DNA of 64,000 nucleotides, taken from assembly GCF_052425735.1 (NCBI RefSeq), contig NC_135763.1, positions 17,236,001 through 17,300,000 on the forward strand. The letters run 5' to 3'. A model generated the notes under the pieces. The model was given only the letters and a program-made list of their open reading frames with translations. It was not told where the DNA came from and did not search any database. Of the stretch, positions 25,996 through 55,859 are shown one piece after another. Within the stretch, counting starts at the first letter, position 1; each line of letters opens with the position of its first letter. The position numbers and the translations under genes are program-made. The DNA is from Oculina patagonica. Lineage: Eukaryota.

Positions 25996-27324
25996 ATGTC
26001 TCTCGATGTGGCCAGTAAAGACTATTGGGAAGCGACATCTAGATGTTCAATCAGCGAGAGATGCAAGTTCATGTTTAACAACGAATTCTTGAGCGATGTG
26101 AAGTTTGCTGTTCGCCAAGGCGGAAGTGAAAGTATGAAGAAGATTCCAGCTCACAAGTTCTTGTTGGCGATCAGTAGCCCAGTATTTTTTGCCATGTTTT
26201 ACGGTGAATTGGCGGAGACGAGAGATTCTATCGATATCTCTGATTGTGAGTACGAGAGCCTGTTGGAGTTGTTCCGTTTCATGTACAGCGATGATGTGAA
26301 CTTGAACCCAGACAATGTCATGCAAGTTCTTTATTTGGCGAAGAAATACATGCTCCCTTCCCTTGCTGACAAATGCACAGAGTACCTTGGAAAGAACCTG
26401 GATGCCTCAAACGTGTTTCATGTCTTCCCGGACGCACAGAAGTACGAAGAGAAAGATCTTATGGATCGTTGCTGGGAAGTGATAGATGAACAGGCAGACG
26501 AAGCTGTGACATCAGATGGTTTCGTGACAATCGAGAAATCAGTGCTGGAGGAATTAGTCGAGAGAGATTCGTTGACCGTCAAGGAGGTGAAATTATTCAA
26601 AGCTGTCGATTGCTGGGCTACAAAGGAATGTGAAAAGCAAGGCCTAGCAGCAGAAGGTTCTGTGAAAAGAAGGATCCTTGGAGAACGGATCGTTAAAGCA
26701 ATTCGTTTTCCGGTGATGGAAGAAAAGGAATTCGCCGATGTTGTCCTAGACTGTGATATACTAACAAAGAAAGAGACTTTCGCCTTGATGAAGTATTTTA
26801 ATTCTGTGCTGAATTTTCCAGTGGGATTTTCTGAGGTCAAAAGAGCTGGTTCGCATCAGCGAATGTACAGGTTTGGATCAGGAGACAGATTGCAAGGGTG
26901 GTATTATCCTTGGAACTGTTCCGATTCGATAACTTTTTTGGTAGACAAAAACATAAAGCTTCATTCAGTGCGTCTGTTTGGTAGCGAAAGTAATGAATAT
27001 TCAGTGACCCTAAGAGTGTATGCTAATGGTGATACAAAAACAAAGACAGGCAAGTTTCTGTCTAAACTTGTACAGAGTGAAGGAGGCGATTACCACGGCT
27101 TTGATATCGTGTTTGAGCCTCCAATTGCGATACAGGCACAGATCCAGAACCGTTTTCAAGCCTCCATTAGTGGCCCACCTTCCTGGTATGGGCAAGGTGG
27201 CCTGTCTCGTATAAAATACTCTGGAGTAACATTTTACTTTAATGAGACCAATGTATGGCCAGGCCCAGAACGAACTATTGTTAAAAACGGACAATTTTCC
27301 GAATTCGAATTTACACTGAACTAA
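25996..27324 (+). CDS. BTB/POZ-BACK-PHR protein, BTBD3/BTBD6-like (intronless), copy 2
   Basis: 442-aa ORF paralogous to 3072-4421; ends GQFSEFEFTLN. Confidence 0.93.
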   Translation: MSLDVASKDYWEATSRCSISERCKFMFNNEFLSDVKFAVRQGGSESMKKIPAHKFLLAISSPVFFAMFYGELAETRDSIDISDCEYESLLELFRFMYSDDVNLNPDNVMQVLYLAKKYMLPSLADKCTEYLGKNLDASNVFHVFPDAQKYEEKDLMDRCWEVIDEQADEAVTSDGFVTIEKSVLEELVERDSLTVKEVKLFKAVDCWATKECEKQGLAAEGSVKRRILGERIVKAIRFPVMEEKEFADVVLDCDILTKKETFALMKYFNSVLNFPVGFSEVKRAGSHQRMYRFGSGDRLQGWYYPWNCSDSITFLVDKNIKLHSVRLFGSESNEYSVTLRVYANGDTKTKTGKFLSKLVQSEGGDYHGFDIVFEPPIAIQAQIQNRFQASISGPPSWYGQGGLSRIKYSGVTFYFNETNVWPGPERTIVKNGQFSEFEFTLN

Positions 27325-29937: not shown

Positions 29938-32900
29938 TTAAAGAATCTCATTCAAACGGCAGTGCTCATACGCTAGCCTTTGTTTGGCTGTTTGGAACGC
30001 CTGCTTTATATCGCTAAATTGTTCATACTCGTAAACAGCACGGGTCACATTTTTCCCATCAAATGGATCTTCGATGCGAATATAAGGCCTGGTCCACTTT
30101 TTATCAAAAGGGACACGTTTAGTGCTCGCTAGACGAACTGATAATACTTTATACCAGTCAAAGTCACAGTAAAAATTAAAGAAACCGACGAAAAGACTGC
30201 CAAGGCTCTCTGTGTTAGACGACTTATATGAGGTAACAACTGATGGAAGAGAGCCACTGGTCAGCTTATCAGCTAAAGCGCTGGCGCTCGACGATGAACT
30301 GAAGTGTGTTGGGCTGGAGCTTTGTAAAGATGGTAGGACGGCTGGGCTGCAACCTCTCTGTAAGTAATAAATCACCAAAAGGACCACGGCGAAACCTATA
30401 TTAAGAGAAAACCTTTAGGCGATGTTCTAATTATTTTCAAATTACTATGGTTTTTATTTATATGCATCTTTAACTTTCTCTGATATTCTTTTACTATATT
30501 ACTCAAAAAAGCACCGCGGCTTTACTAAAATTTCGACGTTTTGATGCGACGCTAATTCAAAGCTTAAAGGCGAAATTTAAATAAGTCGCCTTTGCTTTGG
30601 TATTGCGTCACCTCGCTTAGTGATTGGTTTAAACATGTTTAAAAATCCTCGCGCAACTAGTTCCCCGCCAATCAGCCGTGATTCGCTCTCGATTGCTTCG
30701 AGTTTTGATTGGCTTACTGGATTGTTTGCGTTTGGTTTTGGTTTTACCATACTCAATTAAAAATCGCTCTTCCAACGCACTAACGTAACTAGAGAACTAC
30801 GTCACTGACCCGAAAGCTTGTGGTCATGCGCACCAGTGATCCTCGACACTTGCGCCCAGTACTTGACGATCACTACCAGCGGAACAACCCTGGGGTCCAT
30901 TTTACCATAACACTTTTGTAAGTAGGTGTTGAATATGGAATTCTGGATATCGACACTGATATCTCCCTCGAGTCTTTCACTTCGGTCCTTGAGCTTCAAT
31001 ATGGGGACTACTGCAGTGCTGATCAGCTGGAATAACAAACACAAGAAACAATGGAAGAATACACAGTGTAGCTAAACTCGTTTCCACGTCTGGCAGCGTA
31101 AAAATTCAAGATTTCCTCAGCACAATACGGAGAACACACATCCTTGAACAAGGACAACAAATTCAAAAGCAAAAAAACAAACTAACAAACAAACAAAAAA
31201 TGATGTTTTCTTATTGCTGTTTGTTTTTCTTGTTTTTGTTTGTTGTTTTTTGGTTTTTTAAACAAAAGCCGCGAACATCGTATCGCAGTGGCGCCACGAT
31301 ATTTTTAAACGCACTCCTTTACCCGGTAACTGCATTATCATTTCCGTTTTTTGGAGTGTCACGCAGTGCTCGGTAGATGTGTTGCGTGACACAGCCATAT
31401 AATGGTCCAGTACCAAGGAGAGTACAAGGGTAACTAGTGGTAACCACAGGTTAGAAAGTGCGGGCCTTGACGCACTTAGACAAGGTACTGGTAGGCAGTG
31501 CCGATAATTATAAATAAACGACTGAACAAGGAGGACTGAAATGATCAAATGGACAATAGACAATTATTCTGAGTAACGCGTCACGCAAGGATTTTTCGCA
31601 CGCGGTGCAGTGTGAATTTAGATGTGATTTTTCTCAGTCGGTAAACTCGCTATGTTGTCAGTGTTATAAAGAATCTCTCGACAATAACCGCTGTTGGAAT
31701 CATTCGCTTCACCCTGGTTTATCTGTGATACAATCACATCAAATGTTCTCAAAAGCAACACATAACGCCTTCACGGAAGGTTTATCTAATGTGACAAGCT
31801 GTTTTTAAAATATCGCTCTTGGAGAACAGATTTTTCTCTTCCGGTTTTACGACAAACTGTCGTGATTAACACATTTTCGCCTTCCGATCGTGCTTAGTGG
31901 AAGAACAAAGATTTTCAACTTCCGGTTCGGTCCTGGTTTATAAACGTGGCACGCACGCGTAAAACGCAATCCGCTGGTCACTGTCAAGATTAGGGTTGCG
32001 GGCCTCTCTTGGGCCCGCAATTAATGGGTTGCTTGAGGCTCAAACGCAAACGTAGAATGAGTTTCAAGGAAAGTGCGATACTCTGAACATACGATGTGGG
32101 AGAAGCAGATACGCACAACCCGGTGGCAACGATAAAATTAACCAATGGAGTCGAACCGTTTCTTCATTATTTTACTCTATTAGTTTCAGTTCTGAGAAAA
32201 AAAAATCTTGAAAAAAAATGTTTTAAACAAGAATGCGCTTGCAGGACTGATAAAGTCTTTGCAAAAGCCGCGCAACACCTTCACCCGGAAACATAATGCC
32301 GGAAGTTTCGACGGTGTAAAATTGTCTGTTTAAGTGCTGATTAGTCTGCGAAAAATGGAGATTTTTACAATAGCTTGCTAAACCCACACTCTTTTCCTCT
32401 GTGCAATGAAAATTAAATTGATAGTAAACAAAATGCAAGCTGAAAATTATCAACACGTATTGAGATTGTTTGGACAATTCAAAAAAGGCGTGATTGGAAT
32501 GATTAGAATCGTAAATACTTGTTCGGCAAACCGAAACCGAAACTAACTTACTGAGACATTTTAAATAAATCATTTTCTTTAATTCTTTTTGCGATTTGCG
32601 CGAAAATAGTAAATGTCAGCACAGAACATCGATAGTGTTCAATCCATGACAAGTCAGCGCACAACATGTCACTTTTGAAACAATAATTCAATATTTTTGC
32701 AAAGCATCACTCTTAAATCTGTTTTTTCGTTGATCCTTAAAGTAAGGTATTTTTACTTTGATTCAAGATCTTGAAAACTTGAAATGAGAACAATGAATCT
32801 TAATTTAAGAAGCGATGTCTTAAATCAAGAGCTAAAGAACAGGCGACCATGTCTTGAGAGAAAAATTCTCAAAATGAGATAAAGATGTCTCAAAATGAGT

Positions 32901-35900
32901 TTAGAAATATCTTAAAGCAAGATATGAACCTTGGGACTTTAAAAATGATTTCAAGCTCAATAAAAAGCAAATCTTTTTATAAAACAACTTTTAATTCACT
33001 TCTTAACACCAACATACAACCATTACAAATAACTCATTAAAATAAAATAAAGCAGGTGAATTTTAATGCTAAACTAACCCTCTAAGCACCATGCTGATCA
33101 AACTAAATTCTTTGAGGAACAAAACAGATTAGCCTTTGAACTTCACACCTGCCTTAATTAAAGAACAAACAACTTCTTCCAATTAAAATTACAAGAAATG
33201 TATGCTACAAGTGGTAAGACTCTAAGTTGATTACATGTAACTACCATAATTTGAAGGGCTAACAACAATAATAATGCTATTATGGTATTTAAGTTAAGTG
33301 TAAACGCAATCTATTTAAAGGTGCTATTATATACGAGAGGCAGGTCATTCAAAACATGACTTAACTAATCCAGGTTTAGTACAAGTTTTTAATTTAGTTC
33401 TGTAGCTAGCATCAACTCCACAAAATGTAAGCTCTGACTATGCTCTTAATTTCAAAATCAATTTTAAAATTTTATGCTAGATTAGCCCTCTTAATTGCAA
33501 CAACTTTCGAGGAACCAGTTCCTGCAGTCCCAGTTGCAGCTAACCCTTATGCTAACCCTTTCACTGCAAGTGAAAGTAATTACAATTTTCATTGAAACTC
33601 AAAATCTGCTATAAAAATTAAACACTGGAAGTTAGTCATCCAAAACCATAGCTATCTTACAAAAGCATTGCAAAAATATTTCACTTCACTGTACTGGCAA
33701 CACCTCATCATGATGTTGACTCCATACATTGAAAAGCTAGTTGATTACACTTTATGAGTAACGGTTCAATTCAGCACGTGAAAGGGTTAATTTAAGCAGC
33801 AGCAAAATAATTTTCCTTCGTTGCTATGTATAAGCTACCATTAATTCTGTTAGCATGAAACACTTGGTGCCTGTACAAGTGGGTATGTAGTGTTACTTGG
33901 TTGCCTCCAGGAAGATCAGGGTCACATATCTTATACGCTACAAGCTTGTCACAGTATGACTCACAGTCCATGACTTTAGTGACAAAGAAGGGGTCTTGCA
34001 ATTGTATAGCATACCAGATGTTTAAAATCTTTGCAAACTCTGGAAGCCCATGCTCATTCAGTCCTAGCAACAAGTAGTTATTGTCACCACAAATATATTT
34101 TGTACCATAAACAACCACTGATTTTCCTTCAAACAGAGTACAATCTTCAAAGTCGATTTCATAAAATCGTGCAATAAGGCTTTTTGCATATTCTTGTTTA
34201 TTTCCTGTGAGGGGTTTACCACTTCCCAAGTGAATATCATCCCTAAACAAAGAGCATGGGTCATTGTCATCAACAGGTAACATATCAGCATATTCCATTT
34301 GCTGATGTCGTTTTGCAAGTGTAAGTGGTAAATTTTTAAAATTTTTAATCCGTCTTACTATGTCCTTAAAGTAAGAGTGCTTGGCTTCAAATCTCATGCA
34401 CCATGTCCTTATAAGAGGACCAAACATCATCATTTGAGAGGGCAAGTGCACTAAGAAATGCTGCTTAGGTAAAATTCTTGCCCCATAAATTTCTTTAAAA
34501 AGAATTAAATGTTCTTTAACGATTCGTTTAAGGTTCAAAATAGAACTTGAAGTTATCTTTTGTGCAAAGCAAATTCCCATAATTTCCAGGAGGGATGTAA
34601 AGCATTTCCACTGTGGACTTTCACTGTCTGTGATACCTCCTAAAATGAGAGGAAGGATCCTGGATAGCTCCCACATTTGAGCTGCATTTTGACCAAGGTT
34701 ACTGTCAGACTTAAAATCTATATCATCGTTTTTTATGAACGATGGTTTATCCTTTACATTAGAATAACCATAATGGATATTTTTAATTTGTGTGTTCAGT
34801 TGATCTAATGTGACTAAACCAGGTGTATGAAAATACTGTTTCAACAAAAACTTAAGTTCATAAGACAAAACTCCTTCCAGAAATATATGCATAATGTCCT
34901 GTGGTAGTTGTTTAGTAACATCAAAGTCTGGTATATTGCACAACGAAGACCTTCTGTTGATGCCATATTGCTTTGAAAAATATTTTCGTAAAAAAGGTGA
35001 ACCTGCATTTTCAATATCACTTAGCTGGTGTTCATGCCAATCACTATCCCGAAGGAGAAATTCCTCTTCAGTAAAATGCTGCTGCATGGATTCCCAGTCG
35101 GTCATGCAGTGACGGCACTTGCGGTATGCACCACCAACACCCTCTTTGTAACCACCTAATGAGTTACTGGCTGGGGTATCTGCCAGGACGGCCAAAACAG
35201 AACCATGTAAATAAATTTTTCCACCAGCAATTTCAAAAGGATATCCAAAATCACTTGATAACACCTTAAGGTCTTCAACAAGGGGCTCCAGTATCCTATC
35301 AATGCCATATTTCTTTATGTAATTTACACTGCAAGTTGCAAATAAATGAATTGATTTCAATTTTGATCTGTATTTGTAATCTATGTTTGCCAGTTGGTAA
35401 TAAAAGAACCCAATTTTGTGCATTTTGTTTGTAAGTGGATTGGCAACATTTACATCATCATAATAAAGCAGAATCTTGAGTGATCTATCATCTGTTGAGA
35501 ACAAAGGGTGACTTTGGACAAATGTGCCATCACTTAAATCTTCCATCACATGTCCCTCCTTTGGCAACAGGTCCGAACTCTTGTACACCATGTTGAAAAT
35601 TTGTTTTGATCCAGATAGCTGGTTTTCTATAGATTTTAAAATGGAAATGTAATAAAAGCATTCATTACGTTTAATTATTCTTTTTTTGTTATTACGTTTG
35701 GCTTTTTCACGTTTCTTGCCCAGTAAAACTGCTCGAGGCTCCTAGAAAGAACAGAAAAAAATCAGATGTAAGTGCATGTACAGCACTTATACCATATAAT
35801 TATACATGAAAACATGAGAAAAGCAGAATCTTGCCACATTGTGTAGTTCCAGAAAATATCTATACTACCCCCACACTGAAGGGATTGGAAATTCCTGAGG

Positions 35901-38189
35901 GCCACTGGAGGTCACAAGGACCAAAAAAAATAAAGAAATATGTGGAGTTTAATTGGAATTTCCAGATGGGTGGGGGGCCCTTTTAAAAATCCCTTCCATG
36001 GGAGGGGGGAGGTATGGGTATGTTGTGGAACTACACATTATAATTAAGTTATATGTACCACACATAGAAGTTTTCCATCTGTTGGTAGCCATCCCTTCTC
36101 GAGGCCATCAAAACAACTTGACAGTTCATCAAAACAATATGTTGCTTCGGGTATGTCTTCCAATTGAACATCAGCATTCTGCAAAGCTTGTGCCAAGTTC
36201 CTTCTGAGGTCATGCAGCGCACCTTGAAAGAGTCGGGACGTTGCACATGCAATGTTTTCCACTGTTCGTTGTGGAATACGATTTTCTTCTTTGATTTTCA
36301 CAAGGTAATTCAATGTCTTTTGCTGTAAATTTGCACCACTAGTTACATTCATTGATTCACTACCATCTTGTGATTCATCATCAGTTGAGCTGTCACCTTC
36401 CTGATCTCCAACAGTTTCAAAGGAAAAGAAAGGATCAGCACCAGGAACAGTGTCATCGGCTGAATCAACAGCTTCAGTTAACGACAAGGAGTCACTGTAT
36501 TCATCATGATCGCCAACACTTAATTCACACCAATTCCCTAGAAACAAGAAACCATCAATAATTTTACAAACAGTAATATTTAATAATTATAATTAATAAT
36601 TACTGTTTGCAAAAATTGCCAATAGCTGCTCTTTATGGCTTATCTTAAGAAATAAAATATTTTTTTAGTCACTAGTACCGCTGCTGTAGTACTTTTATTC
36701 CATCTTCTCTAATACTCCAGTCCAGTCCATGACCTCTGGCTCTCTCAAATTTCAATCGACACTTAACGATACTATCACAGACTTAATTTAAAAAAATGGT
36801 GGCTTAATACAGTTTTGAGGGGTAAAATTGCCAAACTTTTAACTTTTTTGTAAAATGCTCAAAATATTTACCTTCACAAGCTGCGTAACTCGGATCGGGA
36901 CTTCTCAGAAATCGATGATGTTTTTCACGCACGTGACGAACGAAGGTATTCGCTTTTTGGAAAGTCCTCCCGCAACCCTCTATGCCACACACGGTGTTCA
37001 ACTCTTCGAATTCCGTGGAATGCCTTGTGTTTATATGTGTTAATAAAATGCACAACTGAAGTGCCGCAAAACAAGCGCAAATAGCACATTTCCAAACCAT
37101 GTTAGCTTTATGTTCAGGACCTGTGAACGACTATTTGGAATTCGGGGAGTTTCGGAATTCGTCGTGTGAGAGCCGGAGATCTTTGACGGAGCCGGAGATC
37201 TCCACCCGTCAACGGTGTGGCCAATGAAATACTACCAAGATGTGTCGTCACGAATTCGTTTTGGCGGGAGTTGCCAGTAGTTTTTCGGGGTTTTTGCAAC
37301 CATGATGGATTCAGCGGACGAAGAGGTTGCTGGCTACCTTTCTGAGGGATTTACTCCACCGTCGAAGAAAAGAAAACGACAAGTAACTTGTCAACAGCTG
37401 GTCAGTTCTCTTAAGAGTCGTTGGGGACTTTCGGAATCAATATGTCGAGTTCTTGAAGGTTAGTAGTGAGGTCTAATAATGGCGATAATATTGACCAATG
37501 CAATACAATGTTACAGTAATGTGTTTCTTGTTTATTCAAAGAGAACGCTACTTCTCTAATTCTGTGACATTTTAGAATATGGCTGTTCACTCGTTTTAAG
37601 CTTAAATTATATTTCTTCTTTTACATTGTTAACTCGGCCGCTTTGGTATTATTGGAAAGTCACATTCAACAGTTTTATGGGTTAAATTTGCAGGCTAATG
37701 GCGCGCGCCCGCCCGCCACGATTGAAATCACAACAAAATTTGGCCGTTTTCAGCCGCTGCCGAATTGAACGGAATATAAAAATAACATCTTCAAACAGCG
37801 AAGAAATATCTTTTTAACAGTAAAAAAAACAAAAAAAGCGTGGATGGGCAAAACTTAAGAATATTTGAACGGATTGTATATGGGGTTTAACATTGTAAGA
37901 AACTGTTCATCCTATCAGTTTTTCAATCAACTACCATGTAAGAACGCTCAAGGTACATATTTCTCTATTATGAACCTTTGCTTGTGTCAATTAGAAGTAA
38001 AACATCCTCTAATGTTACGTTTCCTAACGAGTAGTTGAAAAAAAAAGGACTAGACTGACATTGATCATTCTTAATCCTGAGAACAGAGTACAAAGTAGTC
38101 AGTCAATGCACATCTCCGGCCAGGCAACGTTCCGTATTGTTGCAGTCCAATGGCTTCTTCTTGTAATTTTGCAAGTTGTTGTTGTGTGT

Positions 38190-38221
<32 letters not shown>

Positions 38222-41200
38222 TTGGGGGGGGGGGGGAGGGGCGAGGGGGTGGGGGTGTGGTTAAAACTTGGTGATGATGGTTTGCATTATGAAATTGTGC
38301 TCCAGAATCTGTAAAATTTCCAGGACAGTCATCTGACACTCTGCTATTTGTCTTTTTCCAAGAAAACAAAGTTGATGGAGACACTTTCATGAACTTAACA
38401 AGGGAAGACCTTCCTTACCTCCTAGGAAAGAAAAGTACTTTCAAAGAAAGAAAAGAGTTATGGGGCTGTCTGCAGCGAGTGGTAAGATCATTTGTCCAAA
38501 ACATGGAGCATTGAAACTAAAGTGAATATCCTTTCTGGGACAAAAACCTAGCCTTGGTTGCAGACAAAATTACCTTGCAGTGATGATGTTTTTAGGTTGT
38601 CAAAACTGTGAATGTAACTTATTTCTTATAGCGGGCTCTGTTGTCTTTGTTTATTTAGCAATACAGTGGCTTGAAGTCTCCTTTTAAAGAGGTGAGGAAA
38701 TTTAATGAATTTTATGTGTTAATGTAAATCTATATATGGAACGTAGCTGCCATTTCCAACAGCTACATTTTCTGTTATTTTACTGTTAGTATTACAACCT
38801 TACAATTAAGAGTAGTGTATGGCATTTTTGCATTGTTCTGAATGAAATAACATGTTACTTGCTAGCACATCAGAAACGGCAACACTAATATGTACTTCTA
38901 TTATAAGTTTAGCATTAAACTTGCACTAGATAACTTTTCTTTGGGTGTACTGGTACATGTATGTGACACAAACATATGCGAGAATATTTATTGTCTCTAT
39001 GGTTTTCATGTTAGAGAGAAAATGAAGAGTTGGCGGCCTCCCCTTCAAGTATCGATACTATGTCAGTGGAGAGTGATAGTGGAAGCGACAGGGCAACACC
39101 AACACAATCCCAACCTTCAACATCTAGATCAGTCCCAAAGTTGAAAAGGACTCATCGAATGGAACTGGAAAGACAGAACAGGGGACAGGAATCACCTGCA
39201 GAACAGGATTTGAGTAAACCCAGCATCCAGCTAGAGTCGTTCAAGTTTCCTGTATCTAAACGTGTCATGCAATATTGCAAAGAAGGAAAATCTCTTGAAG
39301 AAGAAGATAGAAAGCAGTTGATACGGGACTGTGTGACCTGCTTGAAAGCTGAGTGTGGGGACCATGTAACCAAGGAGCAATTCAAATCAGCCAGCCAGTT
39401 TATTTGTGGCAAAGTGCCAGTATTAAAGGATGTAAAACCACCACACTGGCCAGAAGATGAGGAGTTCCATTATTCTGTAAGTGATCTTACCTCCTCTGTC
39501 AGGGAATAAAATAATAAAGGGATAAATAATTAAATCTATAACCACAGTCTTGGACAGTTTGTGCCCTGATAGGGGTCAGTTTGTGTGTTTCCTCAAAATA
39601 GTTGTTTCTGGGGTAGAAGTAGTTTAACACTTAGAAAATTAAGTGTTACCTATTAAAGAAACCAAGCATATATTAGTCCAGTGAGAAATGTAGGTACAGT
39701 GTAGTACAATATCACTGTTGCCACTGAGAAAGTAACTTTCACTTTTTTAATTTATGAAACATACTGTACTTTTTTCCTTGCAGATGTTGTGATTTCAATT
39801 TATCTTTGGTTCAAAATTTTTCAAACCAGTTCAATTTTCATTTTCCTTTGTTGCAGTTTATGATAACGAATAGAAGTCCAATACTTTGATCAATTTTAAT
39901 CCAAAGCTAAATCACCACAGCATACATGCAACAATTGCCAAGTGCTTTTCTGCTGTATGACCTGTAAATGTTGGTGTACCTTTTAATTGTGTGGTTGATT
40001 CAGATTGATATTATGTTGTTTCCCTTCCAATAAGGCTTCTGTGGAGTATCTTCTCAAGAAAAGATACACAAATCTTAAAAGCAGAAAATCAAAAGACCCT
40101 GGAAAAGCTGTTAACCACCCAGTTCTTGACACAGTCACTGCTAAAGATGCTAACAGCCTGCACCAAGAACTCACCAAAGAGTTACAGAAAGGGCAAAAAA
40201 AAAACCCGGTCAATTGGGCAGCTGTGACAAGTTTACAGAAGTTGTCATTTTCGGCAAGGAAAGATGAGATACAAGCAATGTCTGGCACAAAGGTGGTAGA
40301 TCAAATCCTTGAGAAGTATCCATTCCTTGATAACGAAAGAATTGTAAGTGAAATAATTGTTTATATCCATGCACTGATTAGTTTCCATTAACAGAAATCA
40401 TTCAATTCAATTTTTACACTGATTATTATTTGGGAAGATTTTCAGGGTAATGTAATTGTAATAAATAACCATACAGTTCATAGGATGGTATGCCGGGTTG
40501 CAAAAATAACCAGTTGAAGGACACTTTATAGCCTCCCACAGGCTGTAGGCCTGGGTCACAATTACTATGGTGAGAAAAAAAAATGTTTTTCCCTGAATAG
40601 TTTAGGTATAAAAAAGAAGTGCATGTACCTTAGAATGCTAATGCCCTCAGCCCTTTAGTAAGATACCCATGCAAAACCTTAACAATTTCCTCTTTGCTTA
40701 TATTGGCAGCTGTGGAGTGAGTTGGAATTACACATTTCAGAAGAGCTAACGAAAGAGAATGTGCAGGTTGAGAAGTTTTTTGAGCGCTGGCGAAAAATTT
40801 CAAAATGCTTTGTTGATGAAGACTGTGATGAAGGTAACATCAAAAATTTTGTTTCTAGGGAACTTAATTAACACAATCTGCGCCCTCTGAATAATAGCCT
40901 TGGTGGGAGCAGTGACCTGAGGCTTAAAAGTCCTTTGATCTTTAAGAGGAGATTGTTTTTCTGCTTGCTGGCTAATGCATCTTTTGACAACATGAAAACT
41001 CTAAATTTAAGTGCAGGTAAAGGTTACAAGGTTACAGTATGCAGTGAAGAGGTAATGTTTGTGGTTTGTTGTTGGTGGAATTATTGTTCCATTGAGTTGC
41101 CCATTTCACACTGGGGTTCAGTGTTGAAGGTGGCACCTTTATGGACCAAAATCTACCAACTACGACCCAGAAACTTTACCTTTCGACCTTTCAGTATTAG

Positions 41201-43977
41201 GTCGGTGGCGGGCTGATTTTGTAGGTGAAAAGAAAATAAACAACAGTTAATGGTTGAGTTTGAAACTTTAAAGTTATGATATTAAAAGTAATAATTTTTA
41301 TTTCCATTCCCTATGCAGATGACCGTTGTTCTGCAGCACTGGAGAAAATGCCCAAAGTATTCAATTCATCTGCACCAGCACTTGTCTCATTCATACCAGT
41401 AAGTCTAGTACTTTGTGTCAATTAACACAGTAAAACACTTGTTGAGAAAAACGCAGTGCTTTTATCACTGATTTTTGTTACTAAACATGTTTTGGCTAAC
41501 TGACTTAGGCTTTTATTGTGTTTAAAGAGTTAGCTGATTGAAAGCCTAAAGTAAACATCAAATATCAAAGTCAGTGACAAAGCAGAAACTTTATCTTAAC
41601 AACTGTTATGTCGTGACTACATGCAGTTACTGGCTATAGTAAAACCCTGGTGTTGTATATATTATAGCACAGGACCAGAGAAAGTATTTACATTGGCATG
41701 GTAGTGATATTACTGAGTCTGGACTGTGAAAACTGGCTGTAAAGTGCAGATCTCTTGCAATATATCAATAAACTGCAAGGCTAACTAACTTATGAACTGC
41801 AACCTGAAATAGATAGTATATCTCATGTTAATTCTCATATGATTTTTTTTTTGTTCCAACAGCAAGGCAGTAGTCCAGAAGACTTCCTGAAGACATTGCC
41901 ATCAAATGACCCCCAGTTAGTTTGCTTCACTGGAGAAGATGACATTCGGGATCCTTCGTCATATCAGTGGTTCATAGTTGTAGACAAAGAAATTGTGCTA
42001 GAATGTGAATCTCCCTCAGGCTGTAAAGCCCTTATAACTTTAATTGCAGTGCATTTTGCTTTCAATCTTAAATACCACAGTAATCATGCAGCCATGTTTA
42101 AATTTATCCATGAACATGTGATTGGTGACATTCCCAGAAGGAAATCATATGCATTTAAAAAGCTGGAAAACACTCTTCTCTCTAAGTTAGAACTACCTAC
42201 CACTAATGGTGAGTAAGCATTAAGCAGTGTTTCCTTGAACATTACCTTCTAGTTGTCAAGATTGATGATGTATCGTGCACATTTCATTATTGAAGGTTTT
42301 GTTATCAATACACTTTAGAATGTGCAGTCTGTACACCTGTTGTTTTACTTTGATACTGAGTTCTGTGCTGGTTGTTTTACTTTTCATTCTGCAATATAAC
42401 AGTTAAATTGTGCAGATTTGTTCAAATTTATTCATGAACATGTGCTGGGTGACATTCCCAGAAGGAAATCATATGCATTTAAAAAGCTGGAAAACACTCT
42501 TACCTACCACTAATGGTGAGTAAGCATTAAGCAGTGTTTCCTTGAACATTACCTTCTAGTTGTCAAGATTGATGATGTATCATGCACATTTCATTATTGA
42601 AGGTTTTGTTATCAATACACTTAAGAATGTGCAGTCTGTACACCTGTTGTTTTACTTTGATACTGAGTTCTGTGCTGGTTGTTTTACTTTTCATTCTGCA
42701 ATATAACAGTTAAATTGTGCAGATTTGTTCAAATTTATTCATGAACATGTGCTGGGTGACTTGCCCAGAAGGAAATCATATGAGCTGGAAAACACTCCTC
42801 TCTAAGTTTTTGAGTATTCAAGATATTGTTAACCATATACTTAAAAATATGCAGTCGGCACACCTGTTGCGTTACTTTAATTCTTTAATACCGAGCTGTG
42901 TAGTTTGTTCTTTACGATATATGGGCTACTTTTGTGAACCCAGTATATTATTTGTAACTCAACTTGATGTTAAAGATGGCAGTCACTGAACTACAAAATA
43001 AATAAAATTAAAACATGTTTTGATTCAGTACAAGAGTTCCTTTCATTACTGCTCTTCATCACCATCCTAACTGGGTAAAAAAGTAATTTAGCTTTCGACT
43101 ATCAACATATTCCTTGCGTTATGAGAAAGTAGTAACATTTTTTGAGGTGTGGTTTGAACGACTCCATTCAAACTTGTATTGAGATCTGTATCCGATAAAG
43201 GTATCCTCGTTTTAAGAATACTAATCTTGTTTTGAGACTGTAGAGATCAAGTTCCTTTATTCTCAAAACAAGGCTCTTATCCTTATTTTAAGATACTGAG
43301 TTCCTATTTCAAGATTCCATACAATCTCGTTTTGAGGACATGAATGGTCTTATTTCAGGAACTCAAAATAAGAAAATTTCACCTTAATTCAAGGATACCC
43401 ACTTTAAGAGTGCATAAATCGAACTTCACGTTTAAACGCGGTTCAAACAAGTGCATTCATGAATGGACAAGGCATAATAATTGTTACTCTAGAAGCCAGT
43501 TCAGTCACAATCTTATACAGTAAAGTTAATAACCGGTTATAAATTACAAACATACAGCCGTTTAAACTAGTTGGCTTATCGGTGAAAAAACAATCGCAAT
43601 TAACAACACAGTGAAATCCGGGAGTGAAATTTTACCTCTGTTTCAATTTCAGGTCTTTTCCTCAAGTCGTCTCGAATTCGTCTTAGAACTTGAACCCCAG
43701 CATCCATAAATCCGTAAAACATCATCCTTTCTGTTTGAACAACCGTCAAATCTACATCACATCCCTCGATAGCAAAGCCGTTTGTCGACGAACCCACCAG
43801 AACGAGTTGCCGAGTCGGGAATATTTGCTTTATGTTTTGCTCTAAACTGTCGCACCACCTTTTCTTCTTTCTCGCTGTCGCTTCGCTTTCTTTTACCGAT
43901 TCATACTTTTGGATAATCTCACGAGTTAGCGATTCGCGTGAGCGTAGAAACATTGTTGTTCCCGAAATGTCTGACAT
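29938..43977 (-). CDS. GLD2/TENT2-like non-canonical poly(A) polymerase (terminal nucleotidyltransferase), 3 exons, ~338 aa
   Basis: Exons 43977-43636, 31026-30810, 30395-29938 (GT-AG, phases 0 and 1). Motifs LVGSSTNGFAIEGCDVDL, VPILKL..GDISV, KYWA..LSGFAVVLLVIYYLQ, IRIEDPFDGKNVTRAV. The start codon could lie further upstream. Confidence 0.85.
33792..37100 (-). CDS. CACTA/EnSpm-type DDE transposase with N-terminal C2H2-like zinc fingers (3 exons, ~885 aa)
   Basis: Exons 37100-36872, 36537-36059, 35741-33792, phase-consistent with no stops. Motifs YYISILKSI, YYDDVNVANPL, ADTPASNSLGG..CRHC, PQDIMHIFLEG, PKQHFLVH, GPLIRTWCMRFEAKH. N-terminal CAIC..H..H and CGIEGC..HVREKH. Confidence 0.9.
35840..36037. 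mobile_element. Degenerate MITE inside transposase intron 2
   Basis: TIRs TGTGTAGTTCCAGAAAATATC and GGTATGTTGTGGAACTACACA. Confidence 0.65.
37302..42216 (+). CDS. Transposon-encoded SAM-domain accessory protein, SAMD3-like (7 exons, ~534 aa)
   Basis: Exons 37302-37458, 38363-38481, 39015-39476, 40035-40343, 40710-40833, 41319-41398, 41863-42216; all GT-AG and in phase (1605 nt). NLS PPSKKRKR; SAM-like WGLSESICRVLEENKVDGDTFMNLTREDLPYLLG; C-terminal ALITLIAVHFAFNLKY..FKFIHEHVIG. Confidence 0.82.
42096..42900 (+). repeat. Tandem triplication (~310-bp unit) of the accessory gene 3' end and UTR
   Basis: AAATTTAT(C/T)CATGAACATGTG..GGTGAC..CCAGAAGGAAATCATATG recurs at about 42100, 42424 and 42731. 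Confidence 0.85.
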
Positions 43978-44706
43978 CGAGTTGACTCTTTCCCGGAAAA
44001 CCAGTCTACCTAGGGAGGGGCTAGACGGAAGACGAGTACGATTATGGAAACAAGGGAGGGGAGGTTAAGGCACGAGCGAGTTTTTTTTTATGGAAAAAAG
44101 GCCAAACGTCTTTGCTGAACGATCTGTGTTGATATAGAAAGGTGTTCCCGGAACTACAAGGAGAAACAGTAATTTTAATTAAGAGCAATTATTCCTTCCG
44201 GCATTCAGTGTTGCGCATTAATGTCATTTTTTGCATTTTGTTTTCACAGAGTTACAAATGCCCCACAGTGGAGACAAAATTAGCCAAGGTGTTCTCAGAG
44301 AAGACTGCAAATACCCTATCCCAGGAACCCCTTTGTGAGTAAATGTCCCACGGTGATGACTAACAACCTGCCAATTCCCAAAAGAATTCCTTGGCTTTGA
44401 AATGGGTCGGGGGCACGCGCCCGGGCGGTTCAGGGTCGGAAAGTGGGCGGGAGGGATCAGGGAATCAAAGTGGTCATCGATTGCAGTTTAGGCCGAGGAT
44501 TGAATCGTACGTTACATTATGGAAAAAGTTATTGTACAAGATTTTTAGAACCTGAGAGAAGGGTGCAACCTTGCGATTGTTGGTCCGCTACACCCCCGCG
44601 CAGCGACAGACTGGGGACCAGTGGTTTCGTGTTTATACATCAAAGCGAGGCTGATCGTCAATTCAACATGGCGGTCGGTCTCTGACAGAAGGTTTTGTTT
44701 TTTGTC

Positions 44707-55859
<11,153 letters not shown>

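Follow-up and report, generated by a model that had tools for sequence, protein, structure and literature searches.

A 64,000-nucleotide stretch of the genome of the coral Oculina patagonica (NCBI RefSeq assembly GCF_052425735.1, contig NC_135763.1, positions 17,236,001 to 17,300,000 of the forward strand; hereafter the window, in whose numbering all positions are given) contains, at 32708-43412, a 10,705-bp element with the complete architecture of a CACTA/EnSpm-type transposon. The element encodes a zinc-finger transposase and, divergently from it, a second protein, which we call the partner and whose predicted domains resemble those of the vertebrate protein SAMD3. We favor, with a probability of roughly 55%, the explanation that this is an intact, transcribed and recently mobile member of the CACTA/EnSpm (CMC) superfamily, inserted in an intron of a host Cid1/GLD2-type gene and carrying a SAMD3-like accessory partner.

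Termini and boundaries of the element

Both edges of the element can be read directly. On the left, ...AAAGCAT is followed by CACTCTTAAATCTG..., which places the element start at 32708; on the right, ...CACTTTAAGAGTG is followed by CATAAATCG..., which places its end at 43412. The terminal inverted repeat (TIR), CACTCTTAAA, occupies 32708-32717 on the plus strand at the transposase-side end and, as its reverse complement, 43403-43412 on the minus strand at the other, with 10 of 10 bases matching. We scored these ends as CACT(A/G) termini of the CACTA/EnSpm type, with the reservation that their fifth base is C, where plant CACTA elements have A or G. The element is flanked by a 3-bp target-site duplication, CAT/CAT (32705-32707 and 43413-43415, both read directly), 3 bp being the length characteristic of CMC elements. 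An initial annotation, made by a model from the sequence alone, had claimed an exact CAT duplication and CACT-type TIRs, and both are as it described, the TIR being perfect over 10 bp.

The same annotation had reported subterminal arrays, and these are indeed pronounced. The motif TCTYAAR or its complement, YTTRAGA, occurs seven times in the terminal 300 bp of the left end and five times in that of the right, compared with a mean of 0.27 per 300-bp bin over the 64-kb window, and the two element ends are the two richest bins of all. The left array (32708-32920) includes a 21-bp tandem repeat at 32855-32899, and the right array (43200-43412) a local palindrome at 43213-43285. A copy of the element in another public assembly (L049), 99.8% identical to ours, aligns over exactly 32708-43412 and nothing beyond; because the alignment stops precisely at both positions, the boundaries are not a chance reading.

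The transposase gene

The transposase gene model lies on the minus strand and comprises three exons (37100-36872, 36537-36059 and 35741-33792) separated by GT..AG introns, which together form a single open frame of 885 amino acids. Exon 1 (36872-37100) supplies the start codon and, in translation, two C2H2 zinc fingers (C-x2-C-x12-H-x3-H and C-x4-C-x12-H-x4-H); their matches to Pfam zf-C2H2 are weak, and the exon is 57% identical in paralogs. Exon 2 (36059-36537), placed by its AG/GT sites and frame, encodes an acidic linker region that is conserved in paralogs and collinear with full-length homologs. Exon 3 (33792-35741), an open frame of 649 codons plus the stop, is assigned as the catalytic core from Pfam and homologs. 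The spliced model is collinear from end to end with an annotated 878-amino-acid protein of Acropora cervicornis (41.8% identity) and also with an annotated 879-amino-acid fish protein, and these end-to-end alignments support the three-exon structure.

Exon 3 matches Pfam Transposase_21 (tnp2) with an E-value of about 1.4e-3 to 1.6e-3 (18 bits against a curated cut-off of 28.6), and its match to DUF4218 is likewise below threshold. It has homologs at E=0 in Montipora, Acropora, Exaiptasia, Actinia, Dendronephthya, teleost fish and a sponge, several of which, 48-55% identical, carry PF02992 or PF13960. Through these homologs and their conserved residues the exon can be assigned a Tnp2/Transposase_21 (PF02992) DDE core. 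When 19 such proteins are aligned, D188, E289 and a CxxC pair (exon-3 numbering) prove invariant and D95 is present in at least 90%; in the numbering of the full 885-residue protein these acidic residues are D424, E525 and D331, in the contexts ADTPA, LEGV and YYDD. This is the pattern that a CACTA-type DDE core should show. The zinc-finger transposase of the initial annotation is thus upheld by the two fingers in the exon 1 translation together with the Tnp2-type core. Its description of the whole as a complete CACTA/EnSpm element also stands: the ends are of the CACT type, with a 3-bp duplication and subterminal repeats, and the DDE transposase is Tnp2-like and carries its C2H2 fingers at the N-terminus.

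The partner gene and its transcripts

The partner gene lies on the plus strand and encodes a 545-amino-acid product in eight exons. Contigs assembled from four sequencing runs of two studies, labeled as probable RNA, carry the junctions 37458/38363, 38481/38659, 38691/39015, 39476/40035, 40343/40710, 40833/41319 and 41398/41863, all of them GT..AG. Because the contigs carry these junctions, spliced RNA is present in the runs, and the seven junctions define eight exons; the partner gene is expressed and spliced. The initial annotation had proposed two divergent, intron-containing genes. The head-to-head layout, the GT..AG sites and the open frames hold, as does, on homology, the three-exon transposase model, whereas its seven-exon partner lacked a 33-nt micro-exon at 38659-38691, its other seven exons being right. 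All seven partner junctions are thus seen in transcripts; for the transposase, the contigs read through intron 1.

Exon 1 (37302-37458; junction 37458/38363 in runs X1 and X2) contains the start codon, a KKRKR motif resembling a nuclear-localization signal, which bears out another feature of the initial annotation, and the first half of a SAM-like domain. The second half is in exon 2 (38363-38481), which is followed by the micro-exon, exon 3, whose two junctions, 38481/38659 and 38691/39015, come from runs X1, X4 and X5. Exon 4 (39015-39476) encodes a Ser/Thr-rich linker and then a conserved three-helix domain (residues 176-257), and exon 5 (40035-40343) a basic helical region that includes an A10 run at 40195-40204. 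Exons 6 (40710-40833) and 7 (41319-41398) are fixed by the contig junctions on either side, exon 7 having also been predicted independently, and exon 8 (41863-42216) holds a conserved C-terminal alpha/beta domain and the stop codon. Two alternatives were ruled out by the contigs: an exon 2 acceptor at 38324, which would insert 13 residues (the contigs join 37458 to 38363), and a six-exon model joining 40833 to 41867 (the contigs include exon 41319-41398).

The 3′ part of the last coding exon is duplicated in tandem, in 307-bp units that are 98% identical and reach into the 3′ untranslated region (42194-42782); a third, partial copy extends to about 42884, and transcript contigs extend into the duplication. 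The copy L049 has one unit fewer. Counted from 42082 to 42884, the repeated part amounts to about three 307-bp copies. The Exaiptasia element described below (L047:3376-4300) duplicates its last exon too, and a fish protein (P0150) is made up entirely of the partner C-terminal domain, repeated four times in tandem. The two divergent start codons are separated by a 201-bp spacer (37101-37301), as given by the gene models, which RNA-derived contigs cross and which is presumably a bidirectional promoter.

A near-identical copy at another site

Over 10.35 kb, 24 substitutions and six noncoding indels separate the copy L049 from the window element; there is no indel in any exon, and the reading frames are intact. 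Its flanks are unrelated to those in the window: it lies inside a different repeat and is bordered by a TGT/TGT duplication. Since a near-identical element sits elsewhere with a different duplication, transposition appears to have been recent. The 7.5 kb of sequence flanking L049 has no counterpart in this genome except for short repeats, and L049 therefore belongs either to another species or to a segment missing from this assembly. Other copies with distinct duplications, which the initial annotation would have led one to expect, were not found elsewhere in this genome when the ends were used as queries; L049, in another assembly, provides one. The suggestion that the element may be autonomous and mobile fares well on this comparison, a 99.8%-identical copy with TGT in place of CAT being what such an element would leave, and it looks both autonomous and recently mobile.

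The distribution of short words in public sequencing runs points the same way. In DNA-like runs labeled as organism B, 0.91-0.92 of the sampled 31-mers of the element (36500-42499) are present, compared with 0.27-0.35 of those of the host flank (43413-45400), for which organism A has the highest share (0.71). By rule of thumb, such sharing corresponds to a divergence of a few tenths of a percent for the element and of several percent for the flank, in a comparison that uses one flank and is a rough measure. These values point to a spread of the element that is younger than the divergence of its hosts, and we treat the contrast between element and flank across organism labels as a lead to recent horizontal or introgressive spread.

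These data also bear on whether the locus is a fixed, domesticated host gene pair that is no longer a transposon. Its single-copy state in this genome, its two intact reading frames and the good expression of the partner would fit such a pair. They have to be set against perfect termini with a perfect duplication and a 99.8%-identical copy elsewhere beside another duplication; moreover, word content is far better shared in the element than in its flank, whereas for a host locus long fixed the reverse would be expected. We consider domestication of this locus highly improbable.

The gene pair in other elements and other animals

At four other loci in this genome, a partner homolog stands head to head with a transposase that is 50-58% identical, and at a fifth the transposase is 37% identical and the partner match weaker. 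In Exaiptasia, a partner homolog (LOC110247362) and a transposase homolog (LOC110247358) are again arranged head to head, with about 500 bp between them; on the transposase side that element ends in ...CTTTAAGAGTG, sharing its 11 terminal bases with the window element, and its other end falls in an assembly gap. In the teleosts Coilia and Trichomycterus, the transposase homolog has a divergent gene upstream of it that is matched, in order, by the partner profiles for the C-terminal domain (E 5e-10 and 1e-7) and for the three-helix domain (E 4e-4 and 1e-3), and also by the N-terminus of the Exaiptasia protein (E 4e-8 and 5e-9). A naive search of the fish loci for CACT termini and duplications gave nothing convincing.

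Comparison with a related element in another assembly (L048) gives the transposase a dN/dS of 0.17 and the partner one of 0.27, values that indicate purifying selection on both genes, and the amino-acid divergences of the two proteins rise together across lineages. These comparisons show the two genes to be kept together, as a conserved unit, in this clade of transposons, both in cnidarians and in teleosts. The partner is a genuine part of the element, because it is expressed and spliced, because it remains linked head to head in diverged lineages and in other animal phyla, and because it is under purifying selection.

A sister family in this genome provides further copies (A, B, F and G). These are 99.3-99.7% alike over their shared parts and lie at different sites, with TTA/TTA and CTT/CTT duplications and ends that read CACTG and CACCC; the flanking trinucleotides of B and G are unequal, and these two may be recombinants. 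Copies F and G lack the catalytic exons but retain the zinc-finger exon and the partner gene. Their deletions have one breakpoint in common, and the deleted form has therefore itself transposed and spread. Derivatives of this type are found at L043+L044 (G000:C2:36468001-36488000) and L045+L046 (G000:C5:17901001-17921000), one of them with a clean CTT duplication. Deletion derivatives of maize Spm that keep tnpA offer a parallel.

In two elements of the sister family, L032+L033 (G000:C8:17773001-17793000) and L034+L035 (G000:C9:29091001-29111000), identity is 99.3% over the 8 kb that include the partner and one end and 78% over transposase exon 3. One of the two is, on this comparison, evidently a recombinant (chimeric) element; its flanking trinucleotides do not match.

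Could the partner instead be a captured host gene, related to SAMD3, that travels as a passenger and takes no part in transposition? Plant CACTA elements capture fragments of host genes, so the event would be a familiar one, and SAMD3, which the partner domains resemble, is a host gene of vertebrates. A passenger would not, however, be expected to hold its head-to-head position where transposases are only 37-58% identical, and in a sea anemone and fish besides. Nor would one expect a dN/dS of 0.27 between copies at different loci, or deletion derivatives that preferentially keep the partner. We therefore think capture of a passenger quite improbable.

The partner protein and SAMD3

From its N-terminus, the 545-residue partner comprises an acidic segment with the KKRKR motif, a SAM-like region (residues 28-93) that is split by intron 1, the Ser/Thr-rich linker, the three-helix domain, the basic helical region and the C-terminal alpha/beta domain (residues 429-545). 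Scanned as a spliced segment of 66 residues, the SAM-like region matches Pfam SAM_1 with an E-value of 0.079 (13.8 bits against a cut-off of 23). All 16 of its 16 sequence matches in the PDB are SAM domains, those of SARM1, Sfmbt and BICC1 included, and all are weak (E 0.019-1.2); the Exaiptasia homolog P0203 matches SAM_Ste50p (E 0.0023) and SAM_2 (E 0.011). The SAM domain of the initial annotation thus finds agreement in the PDB matches and falls short of the Pfam threshold, and we regard the assignment as suggestive only. A Pfam scan of every exon returned no TnpA family, the only hit of the partner being the weak one to SAM, and the partner has no detectable match to plant TnpA.

A profile built on the last exon finds 429 proteins at E<1e-3, mostly single-exon fragments from animals. 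In AlphaFold models the C-terminal domain (pLDDT 86) has an alpha-beta-beta-beta-alpha core, and the three-helix domain is modeled with a pLDDT of 86.7. Matches of these models to solved structures resembling double-stranded RNA (dsRNA)-binding domains and helix-turn-helix folds were set aside as too weak.

When the C-terminal model was compared with 550,000 Swiss-Prot models using Foldseek, mouse and human SAMD3 ranked second and third (probability 0.99 and 0.98, TM-score 0.51 and 0.54), the alignment covering SAMD3 residues 428-519 of 520. The three-helix model gave its best TM-score, 0.56 (rmsd 2.9 Å), on human SAMD3 residues 144-211. Shape searches of the ESM Atlas returned SAMD3 clusters for both models, with TM-scores of 0.63 for the C-terminal and 0.65 for the three-helix domain, and the language-model features of two full-length homologs from Exaiptasia lead to SAMD3 clusters as well. 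Used as queries in word-indexed protein searches, the full-length Exaiptasia homologs P0273 and P0203 retrieved nothing but themselves, and an Atlas search with the last partner exon alone was uninformative.

The matching domains have the same order in the partner and in SAMD3, predicted structures being compared on both sides. Because the matches are in the same order and SAMD3 also begins with a SAM domain, the two proteins are, on these models, likely to be homologous. The Foldseek E-values are weak (0.16-2.7, with 14-18% identity in the matched parts) and the comparison is made at the level of predicted structure, so that homology is not proven. At 520 amino acids, vertebrate SAMD3 is of the same size class as the partner, and it shares the succession of SAM (or SAM-like) domain, three-helix domain and domain at the extreme C-terminus. 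SAMD3 is a single-copy host gene of vertebrates with no known transposase neighbor, whereas the partner is transposon-borne and adjacent to a transposase. Literature searches for a connection between SAMD3, or a SAM-domain protein, and transposons found nothing relevant in the library searched.

Genomic context

The element sits in an intron of roughly 12.5 kb in a host gene that encodes a non-canonical poly(A)/uridylyl transferase of the Cid1/GLD2 type, on the minus strand (29938-31044 and 43600-43977). The MTPAP-like palm domain of this gene is split between exons 43977-43600 and 31044-30802, and its PAP-associated domain is at 30387-29938. Elsewhere in the window, at 25996-27324 on the plus strand, an intronless open reading frame of 442 amino acids encodes a BTB-BACK-PHR protein (BTBD-like) and is an ordinary host gene.

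The introns of the element hold small high-copy repeats. One, in transposase intron 2, is a foldback (MITE-like) repeat at 35838-36045 with inverted arms of 33 nt, copies of which lie at unrelated positions in other loci; in the related element L048 the intron at this position is only about 80 bp and lacks the foldback. The others, at 37773-37888 and 39784-39849, are of very high depth or are found in unrelated loci.

Discussion

In the explanation we favor, the transposase would cut and paste the element by a DDE mechanism, its C2H2 zinc fingers recognizing the element ends. The SAMD3-like partner would be an accessory factor needed for efficient propagation, by analogy with TnpA of maize En/Spm: most likely oligomerizing through its SAM-like domain, it would help to build the complex at the repeat-rich ends, or to regulate it, and may bridge or organize those ends. 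That the partner acts like TnpA, binding of subterminal repeats included, is a role we infer by analogy.

A number of observations weigh against this explanation. DNA searches with both 300-bp ends matched only the window, so that the element is single copy in this assembly. Intron 1 of the transposase (36871-36538) is unspliced in the RNA-derived contigs seen, its splicing was not observed in them, and production of full-length transposase is therefore unproven. Of the four RNA-derived runs, three (X2, X4 and X5; organism B) show one or two additional bases in the A10 stretch of partner exon 5 (40195-40204), which is unaltered in run X1 and in the DNA copy L049; a longer stretch, if real, shifts the frame, and it could reflect frameshift alleles, transcriptional slippage or homopolymer error. 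The SAM match lies below the Pfam threshold, a fold search of the PDB gave no significant match for either modeled partner domain, and the partner has no recognizable DNA-binding domain. Finally, the zinc fingers of the transposase could by themselves account for recognition of the ends, with no need of the partner.

The last points lead to another view of the partner, as a protein that is encoded by the element and directed at the host, for instance in anti-silencing, in tuning the bidirectional promoter or in chromatin targeting, while the zinc-finger transposase alone recognizes and cuts the ends. The two C2H2 fingers of the transposase speak for it, as does the lack of any known DNA-binding fold in the partner, whose C-terminal alpha-beta-beta-beta-alpha core gives only weak matches to dsRNA-binding domains; conserved linkage and purifying selection, for their part, fit any function that benefits the element. 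No direct evidence counters this view. The dense, short and partly palindromic subterminal motifs do, however, resemble the sites bound by multimeric accessory proteins of plant CACTA elements, as the SmTRC1 report describes them (PMC1636069), and a SAM-like oligomerization module would suit a role at the ends. We think an exclusively host-directed partner unlikely, yet deserving of real weight; as functions of the partner taken by themselves, a regulatory or anti-silencing role and an accessory role at the ends are equally open.

Maize En/Spm and the other plant CACTA elements, with TnpD and TnpA, resemble the coral element in their CACT-type TIRs, 3-bp duplication, short subterminal repeat arrays, Tnp2/Transposase_21 DDE transposase and second element-encoded protein, and, in the case of En/Spm, in giving rise to deletion derivatives that lose the transposase and keep the second gene, as copies F and G do here. 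There are also differences. Maize makes its two proteins by alternative splicing of one transcript, whereas the coral genes are separate and divergent; the coral transposase, unlike those of plants, has N-terminal C2H2 fingers; and the partner has no detectable match to TnpA. A two-component requirement would here be drawn from analogy. A TnpA homolog produced by alternative splicing, which defines the maize type and not the superfamily, was not found. In maize, TnpA bridges or organizes the repeat-rich ends, according to background given in the SmTRC1 report (PMC1636069).

Among animals, the nearest precedent is SmTRC1 of Schistosoma mansoni, which, like the coral element, belongs to the CACTA superfamily and has a Transposase_21-type transposase, and whose non-transposase products were proposed as TnpA analogues (DeMarco et al. 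2006, PMC1636069). The same report describes 2-bp duplications, products alternatively spliced from one unit, and extra proteins that were not found in other animal elements (PMC1636069). The coral element differs in its 3-bp duplication and in having its partner as a separate gene, conserved from cnidarians to fish. PIF/Harbinger elements offer another comparison, being cut-and-paste elements with a separate accessory gene beside the transposase; there the partner is a Myb-like DNA-binding protein, and the pair can be co-inherited and co-domesticated, as outlined in two reports (PMC9710019, PMC5339849). Their transposase belongs to an unrelated superfamily, and a Myb/SANT domain is recognizable in their partner, whereas none is in that of the coral element.

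A broader proposal is that a metazoan-wide CACTA clade forms a two-component system, in which an obligatory partner is ancestral to, or a close cousin of, SAMD3, and that the coral element is active now and has recently crossed species boundaries. The crossing is proposed because the element is far more alike between differently labeled organisms than the adjoining host DNA is. We hold this proposal only tentatively, as a possibility that falls short of an even chance.

To our knowledge, active CACTA elements have been well studied in plants and hardly at all in animals. Animal members of the superfamily have been known since SmTRC1 (2006); the apparent novelty here lies in a separately transcribed, SAMD3-like partner that is conserved across phyla and in evidence that such an element is currently active in a coral. 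An intact and recently moved coral copy with an expressed partner could serve as the first animal CACTA system to be experimentally tractable, and the element may contribute to structural variation in reef-building corals. The steady pairing of transposase and partner from cnidarians to fish allows the purpose of the second CACTA gene to be asked about directly. The resemblance to SAMD3 suggests where a vertebrate gene of unknown function may have come from and what it may do: if the two-component proposal is true, SAMD3, a protein of immune cells, would derive by domestication from a transposon accessory protein and would bind or organize nucleic acid.

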